From positions 372,001-436,000 of the forward strand of contig JAHLTZ010000004.1 in NCBI GenBank assembly GCA_025786725.1: DNA of 64,000 bases, in the 5' to 3' direction. Shown here piece by piece: positions 4,261-21,764 of the stretch. Numbering within the stretch: the first letter of the stretch is position 1; each line of letters starts with the position of its first letter. The notes under the pieces were generated by a model. It did not search any database, was not told the DNA's origin, and saw only the letters and a list, made by a program, of their open reading frames with translations. Made by a program: the position numbers and the translations under genes. This DNA comes from Syncephalis fuscata S228 (Eukaryota > Fungi > Zoopagomycota).

Positions 4261-7201
4261 ATGACTATGTTTAGGAACTTGAAGATGGGCAGGATTGTCC
4301 TTAATGACGATGAGTTTGAAGACGATGACTGGGCTCTTGACGTAAAGCCAGCTAGTGCGCCTAAAGTGGCTCCGGGTGCTTATAGTTCACCACCACCACC
4401 TCAAAAGTCTATGCGGTCCTCGTATGGTGGTGGTGGTGGTAGACATGACCATACAAGACAGTCTAACGTATCTGTCTCGTCTATACTTGACAGCGACGAC
4501 GAGACTTACTCTTACAGTGGTAGTAGACCGGCACGTCATCAGTCTATGGGTGTTGCGTCGTCATCCGCTCATAGTAGTCGGTATGGTGGACATGATGGCA
4601 ATCGTAGTTGGGCACCCTCTGAAACAGGTGGCTCCTCGGTGGATTATCGATATCATGACGGTAGACCGGTTACTCAATCCGCTACGAGTAGAACGGTATC
4701 GGTTGTGGGCAGTGCTATGGGACAGCGACGTATCGTAAATGATGAATTGGACTATGAAAACGATAAAGATTTAGATTGGAAGAATCAGGATGATAAGCCA
4801 CAGTTAATATCTTCGGATGCCACACCTGATATGACATTAACCGTGAGTGTATTAATATTGGCAAGTATTTAGTACTTAGATTTTGTCTATAGTGTCCATA
4901 TGACATTGATGTTGAAGGATTATTTGGTAAAGAGATGCGCGTATTTAAACGTATGAGTGATAATTCAACTGTTCATATTAAATACAATGCATCATCTCAT
5001 GTAAGTATTAAACTATAAATAGGATATTGATCTAATAGTATGGTGTGTGTATATATATAGGAAATATTTATGTGGGGCGAGTATTCACTTGTAAAGGAAG
5101 CAAAACGTACAATGGAACGCCGATTTGATTATTTGTGTGATGTAAGAGTGCTATATTAGGGATTAATACAATCTGACATTAATAAATTGCCATGTTTATA
5201 GAATATTGAGCGAATCACTAAAATGAATAAGAAGAGAAAAGAAGATGCTGGTCGAACTATTACTAGAAAGTCTGATATTCGTCGAACTGAAAAGGCTGAA
5301 AGGTTTGGACTGGTGGCCATGGATGATTTACGTAAACTGCCTGAGAATCAAACGAGTCATCGTGGTGTATTTATGTTGCCTAGAAGTGACGTGTTGCCTA
5401 TTGCTCGACTACTAGGCCCTAATGGAAAGCCATTGGATGATTTACGACATGATTTAGGTTGTCGTATTGTATTTGGGGAACGAGAAGCACAGGAAGGCGT
5501 AGGTCAATTAATAATAATATATATATATAAAAGTGTAGCTAATGAGTTTATAATAGATTATTAAAGTGGCAGGCAATTCGTATGAGCTAGTACGAGAAGT
5601 ATTATCTCGTTTAACTATTCATGTAGCAAAACGTGTAAGTTTTAAACTATTATTAAATGTTATGGCCACTGATGTTAATACTAGACTTATCCACGTCCAC
5701 CACCGGTACAAGAACGTCTATTTGATGTTACGGAAAAGCCAATGGAAATTACTACCGAACGAGTAACTGCCAACTATATACCATGGGATCTACCTCAAGA
5801 TAATGCCTGGCATACCTCGCCTACCGTATTAAAGGGTATTCTATCTGGTGATATGTTTAATAGTAGTCGATTGACCGAGTAAGTAGATATAGTCATTACA
5901 GAGTCATTTACTTATGTCTATATTATTAGATCGAGAAGTAGTCTAGAAGCGACCTTAACCCGTAACATTCAACGATTCGTGCGGTTTATTGGATTACACG
6001 ATGGCAATGCAAAGATGCGTATTTGGTAAGATTTAATTATAATAGTATAATAGCATAATAATATAATACTGAAATGCAATGGATCATTAGTCTAGGTACT
6101 TGTCTAGTCAGTGATATTTCACCAAAACTACACGATTTAAGTCAAAAGATTGCCCTTAAAGAAATATTTGTCACTCAAAATGCTTTAATGTATTTCTCGA
6201 GAAAGTAAGTAAAAAGTTTATACTAATAAGAACTGTATTAATACTTTATCTAGTTTATTACAGTCAAATCATCAAGTAGAATTATTGACTAGTCGTCTAC
6301 CCAGCAATTATCGTCGTGTAGATGATGATTATAGCGTTGGCTATTCGTTCCGGTGTGAACATCGATCATCGAGTGCAAGCTATTCGCCAAAAACGGCCTG
6401 GCCAAATATTAAACTACGCGTCTGGTTCTCCCGTGAAGGAAGAGCCAGTCGATGGGAAGCAGTTATTGGTGAACGACGTGAACTTGACTTGAATGTCATC
6501 TATCCAAACAAGTAAGTTATAGTCATTAATCCATATTATATATGGCTGGTTATTAAATATGCTATAGTGATTATTATAACAAACCAGATTGGCGACTTGA
6601 AGCCACTACTTGGTTCCATAGTCCAATTAAACCAGACTCGGAAATAGGTCGTCTCGTTACTCGAATGCGTATCAAGTAAGCTGCTTAATGATTAAAACAA
6701 CGGCTGTACTAATTATATATGTATATATATATATATATATAGTGAACGAGGCCGCCTTGAATATAGTAATACAGATCAATTGGTCGTGCAACAAATTACT
6801 TGTAAAACACGTATACTTTACGAATCAGCCGATGATTTCCAACTTGAAATAACTCGAGCTCAAGTTTGGAATTGTGATCCAGATACAGATGGACGTGATA
6901 CCCCTACACCATTACTGGCCAAATCGACATTTGAATCCTATGGTGCTACGGTAAGAACAGTATACAACACTTGTAATATAGCTAATGCATCTATCTATCT
7001 ATCTATAATATTCTATTGATTGATTGATTTTATTAGATATGGCCACTATTATGGAAACGACTATTAGAAGATAATAGCCATACCTCCATCGGCTGTGTGC
7101 CTAATTACAGTGAGGGTGACTTTTTCACCGGCAATTACATAAGTAAATTGGTTGATTCTGTCCACACCGTACAGAATACACTTGGATCTGTACTTCATTA
7201 G
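4261..7201 (+). CDS. Uncharacterised multi-exon protein with two KH-like segments
   Basis: Chain of GT-AG exons from ATG 4261 to TAG 7199-7201; LFGKEMRVFKRM..IFMWG and RLLGPNGKPLDDLRHDLGCRI (GxxG) resemble KH folds. Confidence 0.55.
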
Positions 7202-19669: not shown

Positions 19670-21764
19670 TTAAATTATTTCTGTAAATGCATATAAGTAA
19701 TGAATAAACCAGTAATATACACTATTGCTTACCTCCTGTTAATATTGAATTATTAATGCATATAGTACATATCATGTAGTTAGTGCATAGTCAATTTATA
19801 TACAATATTACATACCAACTATTAATATTAAATCGTTGGCAGGCACAATACGTAATAAGAATTAGTGTATAGTGGATTTATATATAATACCACTTACGGC
19901 CTATTAGTATTAAATGGCCGGTACCAACAATGAATATTTAATTAGCACATAATTAGCCAAGATACCATACCACTTATATCCTATTGATATCCGGTTGTCG
20001 ATACACAGAATGTATAGCATGCAATTAGTGCATAGGCAATTATTATAAAATCTCACTTACGGCCTATTATATCAAGTTGTTAACAAACACATTAATAGCA
20101 TATGGTTAATGCATAGCTAATTAATATACTATGCCACTTACAGACTGTTAATATTAAGTCATTAATAGACACAATAAATAGCTTTAGGTTAGTGCATAAA
20201 CAAATAATATGGAACATCACTTACAGTCTATTAATATTAAGTTGTTGATACAAACAGTGAAAAAGTAATTAATGTATAATCATATAATATAAAATATTGC
20301 TTACAACCTATTGGTATCAAGCCATTAATGCACGCAGTAAATAGTAAGCAATTAGTTAGTAGTCAATGAAGATACAATAGCACTTACGAGCTATCAATAT
20401 TAGATTATAGATACACACAGTATATGGTATGTAATTAATGCATAGTCAATTTCTATATAATGCCACTTACGATCTATCAATGTAGGCCATTGACGAATTC
20501 AGCGTATAGTATGTAGTCAGCACATAACCAATTGCTATAGAATATCACTTACCGACTATTGATATTAGTAGTAGTATACGCGGCATATATAGTTTAATTA
20601 ATGTACAGTTAAATAACATACAGCTTTACTTACATTCTATTTGCATTAAGTTATTAATTCATATAGTATATAAAATGTAGTTAGTACATAACTCATCAGT
20701 ATGCAAAGTTGCTTACGACCTATTATATCAAATTATTAATATGCACAATAAATAGTATTTAACAGTATACAGCTAATTGGTATAAAATGTTACTTACAAG
20801 CTATTAATATTAGTTATTGATACGCGCAGCACATAGCATGTGATTAGTACTTAGCCAATTAATATACAATGTTACTCACATTCTGTTAATATCAAATCGT
20901 CAACATAAATATAATGAGCATGTAATTAGCAGATAGCCACTAGTATATAATATCACCTACTATCTATTAATATCAAGTTGTTGATGTAAACAGCACATAG
21001 AATGCGATCAGTATATATCCAATTAATATATAATGTCACTTACTGCCTATTAGCATTAAGTCATTGATACACACAATGTATAACATATTAGCAATGCATG
21101 GCTAGTTGTTATATAATGTTACTTACAGCCTGTTAGTATCAGATTGTCGATACACATAATAGATAGCATGCAATTAGCGTATGGCTAATTGATATATAGC
21201 GTCACTTACCAGCTATTAGTATTAAATTGTTGATACACACAGTATATGGCATGTAATTAGTGTATAGTTAATTAATATGCAATAGTACTTACATTCTATT
21301 GATTTTTGTTTGGCAAAAAAATATTTAGTTAAATTGTCAGCTGACATACAGTAAAGCTTACGTCCTAGTAATGTCCATTCAGCATATTAGCATGACAAAT
21401 ATAACATTTGATTCGCTAGCTTATAATAAACTTACTTTTAGCCAATAGTACTGATTTAGTCATGTACATTAAAAGTAATATTTAATTAGCAAATATATAG
21501 CTATTAATGTTTTAAACTACGGGCTGATACATGTGTTTTTACGTTTGTCATGTGTATGATGGTAGCATACAATAAGTATTGGAACAGTAATCCATCACCA
21601 TGACTTACCATCTAATAGTATCTTTGGTTAAACATAGCGTTATTGTATATTTATTATAATTTCGACATACCACGACGACCTAGAGCTGGCTTAGCATCCA
21701 CAGAGGTTGTAGTAATTGCAAGGGCCATGGCAAGGGCGCAAACGACGGCAATAGAAAGCTTCAT
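19670..21764 (-). CDS. Micro-exon gene encoding a 62-aa secreted Cys-rich prepropeptide (26 predicted exons, 23 of 3 nt)
   Basis: Exon 1 (21764-21671) encodes MKLSIAVVCALAMALAITTTSVDAKPALGRR+G, followed by repeated YAG|NNN|GTRRG units. Joined CDS is 189 nt with no internal stop: ...DALLLAKR-QSGCNKSCQFDPRYFCRCLGEII*. One donor (19977) reads AT rather than GT; the CCC exon at 21521 has a weak GTAGTT donor. Confidence 0.85.
19733..21295. repeat. Degenerate tandem repeat, about 80-83 bp period, about 19 copies (each unit = one intron + one 3-nt exon)
   Basis: Plus-strand consensus approximately ctattaatattaagttattgatacacacagtatatagcatgtaattagtgcatagctaattaatataatgccacttac-NNN. Confidence 0.93.

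Follow-up and report, generated by a model that had tools for sequence, protein, structure and literature searches.

The minus strand of the window, by which we mean the whole 64,000-nucleotide (nt) stretch of Syncephalis fuscata S228 DNA analysed here (contig JAHLTZ010000004.1, positions 372,001 to 436,000), carries a gene between positions 19,670 and 21,764 that is most likely a divergent member of a gene family for small secreted peptides rich in cysteine; these genes would be built from one-codon exons and enlarged cassette by cassette. S. fuscata is a zoopagomycete that is parasitic on other fungi. In the proposed layout, a conventional exon 1, encoding a signal peptide and a pro-region that runs to a dibasic RR, would end in phase 1 and be followed by 13–42 exons of exactly 3 nt, each followed by its own copy of a single ~80-nt spliceosomal intron; the stop codon would lie in a short terminal exon at the end of the gene. 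All introns would be in phase 1, such that every codon would take its first base from the end of one micro-exon and its other two from the start of the following one. If the homologous introns mispaired in recombination, or if replication slipped between them, whole cassettes, that is, residues, would be added or removed with the frame kept, and point changes within a triplet would alter a residue. The introns would presumably be removed one after another, in a manner resembling recursive splicing, because two spliceosomes cannot sit 3 nt apart. The product may then be processed at RR/KR and act on the fungal host.

Micro-exon genes are characterised by very short exons whose lengths are multiples of three. 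The 20 internal exons of the window array are all 3 nt long, and conventional flanking exons, the first of which carries a signal peptide, are present in the window gene and in 21 paralogs.

A tandem array of putative introns and three-nucleotide exons

Twenty consecutive junctions fitting the regular expression [CT]AG-NNN-G/ATRDGY were found on the minus strand, from AAT (21295-21293) to GAG (19735-19733), at a spacing of 80–83 nt and predominantly in the form YAG/NNN/GTAAGT (slashes mark exon borders). The triplets, in array order, are AAT CTG GCT GCA ATA AAT CTT GTC AAT TCG ATC CTC GTT ACT TCT GCC GAT GCC TTG GAG. Two isolated junctions lie 5′ of the array, ATG at 21611 and GAC at 21364.

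A preliminary description of this DNA, made from its letters alone, had reported about 19 introns of 77–80 nt with one consensus, separated by a 3-nt exon that varies and flanked by outer introns that do not clearly share that consensus. Each part of this observation was confirmed. The 19 introns fit one consensus in a near-gapless alignment, with GTAAGT at the 5′ end, CTAAT/CTAAC inside and yTTRATATTAATAG at the 3′ end. Tandem Repeats Finder returned a period of 82–83 with 66–74% matches, and a profile of the unit matched 19/19 array introns (E = 2e-6 to 4e-19); across the whole 64-kb window, the profile had no match outside the array except the 5′ half of the 52-nt last intron. The triplets take 16 different forms over the 20 positions, and the outer introns score 0.42–0.50 to the units, which is background. 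The mean pairwise identity among the array introns was 0.659, compared with 0.498 for composition-matched shuffles in which donor and acceptor were retained (top mean among 20 shuffles, 0.505). Sixteen ordinary introns of the window reached 0.46 among themselves, and ordinary introns reached 0.43 when compared with the units. The similarity of the array introns, which the preliminary description had proposed to compare with that of composition-matched introns, thus lies above that level.

In their signals, the units look like ordinary introns of S. fuscata. The ordinary introns of the window are 44–86 nt long, start with GTAAGT or GTATGT and carry CTAAY 10–25 nt upstream of YAG; the unit has a GTAAGT donor, a branch-like yTRAy element (TTRAT/CTRAT) at about −13 to −9 and a TAG acceptor.

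A gene family in the S. fuscata genome

A DNA search of the 29.4-Mb assembly with the window array returned at least 40 other arrays, with identities of 64–78%. As 40 of the 275 first-look candidates of this own-genome search were scored, the array count is a lower bound; 26 of the 40 or more arrays (the window array and loci L026-L030 and L031-L050) were parsed. A strict junction pattern, TTAATAGNNNGTAAGT, had 2,016 exact sites in the genome, compared with 0–1 for the reversed control, and fits 48% of the junctions in the parsed arrays (2/20 in the window array). From the number of strict sites and the 48% fit, the genome total is estimated at about 4,200 three-nt exons in about 150 arrays. 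Two further arrays (C2:226057-228495 and C2:245449-247902) have the same junction motif with a spacing partly of 64–66 nt alongside about 80 nt; these may represent a second unit subfamily that was missed by the DNA search.

The arrays share more than the unit. The same first exon (94 or 97 nt, with a phase-1 end) precedes nearly every parsed array, and 21 paralogs have a first exon homologous to that of the window gene, in each case 94 or 97 nt long and with its end in phase 1. The paralogs that were compared directly have in common an upstream region with a TTTAAATAG element, a terminal intron of 68–72 nt and a 3′ flank. The unit motif is confined to one strand in each of the 26 parsed arrays, with no minus-strand unit match inside the 25 arrays other than that of the window. 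All of the 17 library proteins that have both this leader and a species name are from S. fuscata ('hypothetical protein BDF19DRAFT_...'). A metagenome scan for two consecutive junctions gave 0 matches, and a protein homologue search with the 41-residue literal exon-1 open reading frame (ORF) of the window gave no candidate.

At least 150 scored loci (319 candidates) begin with the leader MKLSIAVVC…VDAKPALVRR. These include ordinary single-exon secreted proteins with unrelated mature sequences, among them P0017, which has an SVWC domain, and the leader appears to behave as a reused signal/pro cassette. The deposited protein KAI9596839.1 (P0007, NCBI/JGI) corresponds to exon 1 followed by unit-intron read-through (L048:4146-4220 and 4453-4548), which indicates that micro-exon genes are mis-annotated in the public record.

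The triplets as probable coding exons

If the triplets are exons, joining them should leave a trace in the reading frame. This was analysed on 18 non-redundant arrays, with the triplet order shuffled within arrays in 5,000 trials as the control. The junction-spanning phase-1 frame contained 1 stop in 476 codons, compared with a mean of 30.5 in the shuffles (minimum 17), and the alternative junction-spanning frame contained 40 stops, which is the chance level. The stops that are avoided arise only once the triplets are joined, and their avoidance implies such joining. In the same phase-1 frame, 86 cysteine codons were counted against 41 expected, with a shuffle maximum of 58. In seven genes, an uninterrupted ORF starts at the ATG, passes through 19–42 consecutive 3-nt exons and stops at a TAA within the terminal exon. 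The predicted products have 55–75 residues, with 6 or 8 cysteines in the mature part. The phase-1 reading of the window array, SGCNKSCQFDPRYFCRCLG, is likewise stop-free and continues into the terminal exon. A reading in phase 0, giving a 'peptide' rich in A, I, L, V and N, was rejected, as the end of exon 1 is in phase 1 without exception and TGA stops occur in phase 0.

The splice sites are kept although the unit interiors differ by 25–35%. Donors at the 705 parsed junctions of the family are GT in 690 cases, GC in 14 (GCAAGT) and AT in 1, and the acceptor is AG in 692 of the 705, the remainder being mostly cases of a 6-nt exon. Acceptor and donor are 3 nt apart at almost all parsed junctions, whereas intron length varies from 67 to 82 nt. 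Exceptional junctions are of three kinds. Rare 6-nt exons (attag/CGGAAT/gtaagt) result from an acceptor moved 3 nt upstream; one of them lies near the array start at L027:1328-1336, with the same position occupied in L033, L036, L040, L044 and L049. A 2-nt spacer (aatag/TG/gtaagt) occurs in L037 and L041 and shifts the frame unless the junction is skipped, and double-length introns occur where a junction has died. Only the 2-nt cases lose the frame. From these sequence patterns, we strongly infer that the transcripts are spliced at every junction.

The array might, on the other hand, be a non-coding minisatellite located 3′ of a small signal-peptide exon, with the splice-like motifs being mere parts of the repeat unit. 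Tandem Repeats Finder does see a classic head-to-tail repeat, and the public annotation holds no such gene model. We consider this very improbable, as a minisatellite cannot account for 1 stop against 30.5, seen only in the frame that continues the phase of exon 1, and would leave the doubling of cysteine codons in that frame without a reason. It would equally have to explain a spacer fixed at 3 nt though the rest of the unit takes indels, GT and AG kept at more than 98% of the sites despite an interior divergence of about 30%, complete ORFs whose cysteine count is even, and a paralog that encodes a matching peptide in one exon.

Probable growth by intron-plus-codon cassettes

The preliminary description had derived the coding region from serial tandem duplication of an intron-plus-codon cassette, with unequal exchange changing the number of residues in frame. 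At the level of the family, the sequences support a coding region that is a tandem repeat of this cassette. All units follow one another head to tail, with the same strand and the same phase. Close copies, be they paralogs or haplotigs, are otherwise 1–4% different and are separated by indels of 81, 82, 166, 243, 325 and 641 nt; these are multiples of about 81 nt, which means that whole units are gained or lost. In one example, …CDDCKKRC[RPWASSYL]KCVTYC…, the eight bracketed residues are dropped in one step and the rest is unchanged. The comparison of unit number among paralogs that had been called for therefore yielded whole-unit differences.

Similarity between neighbouring units, which had also been put forward as a check, gave a divided answer. 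In 23 of the 26 arrays, units resemble their neighbours more than they resemble distant units, and several arrays contain middle units that are 92–100% identical, sometimes in two-unit higher-order repeats. The window array itself shows no neighbour effect, with an identity of 0.668 for adjacent units, 0.667 for distant ones and 0.68 to the units of other arrays. A second check, on divergence in close pairs, gave values of 3.3% for triplets, 2.0% for introns and 1.3% for exon 1 (P = 0.07 for triplets against introns; P = 0.05 for triplets against exon 1). The triplets differ slightly more than the introns, which indicates that the residues can change no less freely than the introns; faster evolution of the triplets is a trend only and was not established.

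Four pairs of near-copies (L038/L039, L035/L050, L036/L044 and L045/L046) each involve an array on a large contig and one on a small contig of 14–30 kb, and differ by whole-unit indels or by the presence or absence of a SINE-like element (short interspersed nuclear element; described below). The small-contig copies may be alternative haplotypes and not paralogs, in which case unit number would be polymorphic within the isolate.

The alternative offered in the preliminary description was the repeated insertion of an introner-like mobile intron at every codon of a once intronless gene. Homologous intron copies at 40 or more loci would agree with this, as would the existence of intronless paralogs with the same flanks and cysteine framework. 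We nevertheless hold it to be highly unlikely. No solo unit was found outside the arrays in 62 kb of the window and 87 kb of flanks (about 150 kb), all copies agree in orientation and phase and are separated by exactly 3 nt, and the indels between close copies are whole cassettes. The intronless gene, moreover, nests among the micro-exon genes in a midpoint-rooted tree, which fits better with the loss of all introns at once. The preliminary description had further looked to whether the consensus turns up in many unrelated genes. Taken literally, its recurrence at 40 or more other loci is such a case; yet these loci have a common exon 1, promoter and 3′ flank, and hence are paralogs and not unrelated genes.

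Intronless paralogs and predicted peptides

Some members of the family are intronless. One of them, KAI9591999.1 (P0002, 69 residues), is encoded in one piece at three loci, namely L051:1501-1707 (G000:C240:2569-2775) and identical copies on C308 and C345. Its gene has a promoter region and a 3′ flank as in the micro-exon genes, and its peptide, …KCKECINEC…, resembles conceptual micro-exon peptides such as …ECKECVKNC…. In a tree of the 5′ flank and exon 1, rooted at its midpoint, the KAI9591999.1 gene falls among the micro-exon genes, and the window gene forms a long outlying branch. The intronless paralog thus reads as a product of the precise loss of all introns at once, for instance via cDNA, and a cDNA-derived copy would, if true, be a record of the spliced message.

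A second intronless protein, P0014, has the CxxCxxxC…CxxxCxxxC framework in common with the conceptual micro-exon peptides. Its mature part was predicted by AlphaFold2 as a helix-loop-helix with a predicted local distance difference test score of 85. The nearest Foldseek matches of this model were nigellin-1.1 and vicilin-buried peptides, with template modelling scores of 0.57–0.78 and non-significant E-values above 3; Pfam gave no family for the cysteine-rich paralogs. The predicted helix-loop-helix of P0014 and the family framework recall the plant alpha-hairpinins, which are helix-loop-helix peptides with Cx3C...Cx3C. Given the non-significant fold matches, this is a resemblance and not a demonstrated relation, and the window peptide has Cx3C...CxC. 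A secreted helical hairpin stapled by disulfides, in a mycoparasite, suggests that the peptides of the family may be host-directed or antimicrobial.

Conservation of the intron interior and splicing

About 34 interior intron positions are 85–91% conserved across the family, the old window array included; in the latter, the 34 strongly conserved columns stand at 85%. This pattern points to a constraint on the intron interior beyond the splice sites, and the most economical guess is that the interior carries signals required to splice 3-nt exons.

The same conservation, which exceeds the needs of splice signals alone, could mean that the conserved intron and not the peptide is the product, with the arrays hosting a small intron-derived RNA. 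Tandem introns bearing small nucleolar RNAs occur in SNHG14. We consider such an RNA very unlikely. Rfam matched the region only with a chance-level microRNA model (E = 0.6). RNAalifold gave no consensus structure for the unit, with a folding energy not better than that of shuffles (z = −0.47), and an apparent pairing of ATATTAA with TTAATAT in the unit was discarded on the same results. The unit consensus contains no box C/D-like motifs, the frame evidence makes the exons coding, and splicing signals for 3-nt exons explain the interior conservation more simply.

Returning to coding exons, a more far-reaching scenario can be sketched, which we put forward tentatively and regard as doubtful. 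About 4,000 three-nt exons would be spliced in order, in a recursive-like manner that depends on the conserved intron interior; frame-safe skipping would yield peptide variants, and the arrays would form an evolvable, perhaps somatically variable, generator of host-directed peptides, and a natural system for studying the lower limit of exon size under intron definition.

Age and integrity of the window copy

Several observations weigh against the proposed explanation, both in general and for the window gene in particular. Spliceosomes that assemble simultaneously on a run of 3-nt exons would meet a steric problem, and no literature precedent for the splicing of such runs was found. No spliced micro-exon product was present among the proteins of the public libraries searched, and the deposited annotation renders at least one such locus as exon 1 with unit-intron read-through. 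In the window array taken alone, the openness of phase 1 is marginal (P = 0.049). The window gene has no close paralog, three units at its 5′ end are degenerate, and its peptide has four cysteines in the arrangement Cx3C...CxC, which differs from the family framework. The ATAAGT of the window, located after GAT, is the sole AT donor at the 705 family junctions; skipping of the GAT exon would delete one of the four cysteines.

These features raise the possibility that the family is real and that the window copy is a pseudogene or is becoming one, a reading compatible with the proposed explanation. We judge this decay possible and on the whole unlikely. In addition to the single AT donor, the degenerate 5′ units and the four cysteines in place of the six-cysteine framework of the family, the window gene has the most divergent exon 1 and array (identities of 61–71% for amino acids and at most 69% for DNA), 2 of its 20 junctions fit the strict pattern, and its branch is the longest of the tree. 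On the side of an intact gene, 39 of the 40 splice dinucleotides are preserved though the unit interiors match the consensus at about 70% of positions, the conserved positions of the window array are the same as those of the family (r = 0.76), and phase 1 is open, at the P-value given above, and ends in the conserved terminal TAA. The equidistance of the window units and the absence of a neighbour effect indicate an old array without recent duplication or homogenisation. It is probable that the window array came down from the ancestor of the family and did not expand recently where it now lies.

Comparison with known systems

In the full-text literature searched, we found no description of runs of one-codon exons, or of tandem spliceosomal introns encoding a peptide, in any organism. 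The architecture can be placed among the micro-exon genes, of which it is a new and extreme form.

Schistosome micro-exon genes have exons of 3–81 bp, with lengths that are multiples of three (PMC10526429). They resemble the S. fuscata genes in their secreted products, in a signal peptide carried by a conventional first exon, in coding sequence placed mostly in very short exons, in the keeping of the frame upon exon loss or skipping, and in forming lineage-specific, fast-evolving families in a parasite. In contrast, S. fuscata is a fungus, the internal exons of its genes are nearly all exactly 3 nt, and their introns are tandem copies of ~80 nt and not unrelated introns of up to 5 kb. A comparison limited to Pfam on the paralogs gave no sequence relation. 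Aphid bicycle genes are rich in micro-exons, and nearly all of their internal exons have the same phase (PMC9168663). These effector genes of a parasite likewise encode signal peptides and cysteine motifs and belong to large families that diverge rapidly, whereas their exons are small but not single codons, the phase is 2 and not 1, and tandem intron copies are not reported.

Introners also give rise to many near-identical spliceosomal introns in one genome; they are dispersed in unrelated genes, unlike the S. fuscata units, which lie in head-to-tail arrays, in one family and in one phase, with no solo copy in the about 150 kb covered outside arrays. Recursive splicing makes use of ratchet sites (AG/GTAAGT) in Drosophila and vertebrates, where 0 nt are left and long introns are removed. 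The likeness lies in an acceptor that is followed almost at once by a new donor, with the upstream exon being re-spliced stepwise. Each S. fuscata step would, however, leave 3 coding nt, and the analogy is mechanistic only. Conotoxin-type superfamilies combine a conserved signal/pro region with a highly variable mature peptide. The same holds for the Hessian-fly SSGP genes, in which the signal/pro and non-coding parts are conserved and the mature peptide is highly variable (PMC2955719). Both use ordinary exons, whereas the variable residues of S. fuscata are split by conserved introns.

If the genes are spliced as the frame statistics imply, they represent the most extreme split-gene layout known to us, with one intron per codon, repeated about 4,000 times in a 29-Mb genome. 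They would then demonstrate a spliceosome able to process long runs of 3-nt exons. They would also provide a clean natural case of introns multiplied by tandem duplication, in which peptide length changes residue by residue with no risk of frameshift. For the biology of this mycoparasite, they would add a large, effector-like peptide family that is unannotated or mis-annotated at present. The loci serve as a warning for gene prediction, as current pipelines yield artefactual models there.

Gene model at the locus and minor observations

The features of the window gene are listed in Table 1. The signal peptide of exon 1 was judged by eye, from a hydrophobic leader and a VDA cleavage-type motif.

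Table 1. Features of the micro-exon gene in the window, in order of transcription (positions are those of the window).
Feature	Position	Strand	Description
Exon 1, 94 nt	21671..21764	minus	ATG, signal peptide and pro-region ending RR (MKLSIAVVCALAMALAITTTSVDAKPALGRR), plus 1 nt; ends in phase 1
Intron 1, 59 nt	21612..21670	minus	GTATGT...TAG; not a unit copy, identity to units 0.45 (background)
First 3-nt micro-exon, ATG	21609..21611	minus	Junction TAG/ATG/GTAAGT
Stretch of 244 nt	21365..21608	minus	About three units long; no remaining unit homology
3-nt micro-exon, GAC	21362..21364	minus	Followed by a 66-nt intron, 21296-21361
Repeat array	19733..21295	minus	20 three-nt exons and 19 homologous introns of 77–80 nt
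ATAAGT donor, non-canonical	19972..19977	minus	Directly 3′ of the GAT micro-exon, 19978-19980
Last intron, 52 nt	19681..19732	minus	Unit-like 5′ half, family-specific 3′ end (...TTTACAG)
Start of terminal exon	19670..19680	minus	(G)AA ATA ATT TAA; stop codon 19672-19670; conserved 3′ flank next

The 244-nt stretch can be read in two ways. The preliminary description had modelled a CCC exon (21521-21523) and a 15-nt exon (21436-21450) within it; these exons are unverified and would place …DALLLAKR ahead of the mature part. Alternatively, the stretch is a single long intron. Phase 1 stays open under both readings, and a weak match to the unit profile lies beside the stretch at 21361-21321. At the other end of the gene, nhmmer aligned the last intron to positions 1–51 of the unit profile (E = 0.002); as its 5′ half matches the profile, the last intron is a truncated unit. 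It is homologous to the 68–72-nt terminal intron of the paralogs, in which phase 1 likewise reaches a TAA within 1–6 codons of the terminal exon.

A bacterial-type promoter and terminator scan was set aside, as the gene is fungal. A subtelomeric location of the arrays was rejected, since the contig ends adjoining arrays have no telomere repeats. The SINE-like element mentioned above is tRNA-derived, about 415 nt long and inserted in antisense, with an A-rich tail and a short GTATTGTATATTA duplication (L028:3012-3504). It is present too in L030, L034, L037, L042, L043 and L046, within unit introns and at an equivalent relative site in several arrays, where it extends the intron to about 495 nt and leaves the triplets untouched.

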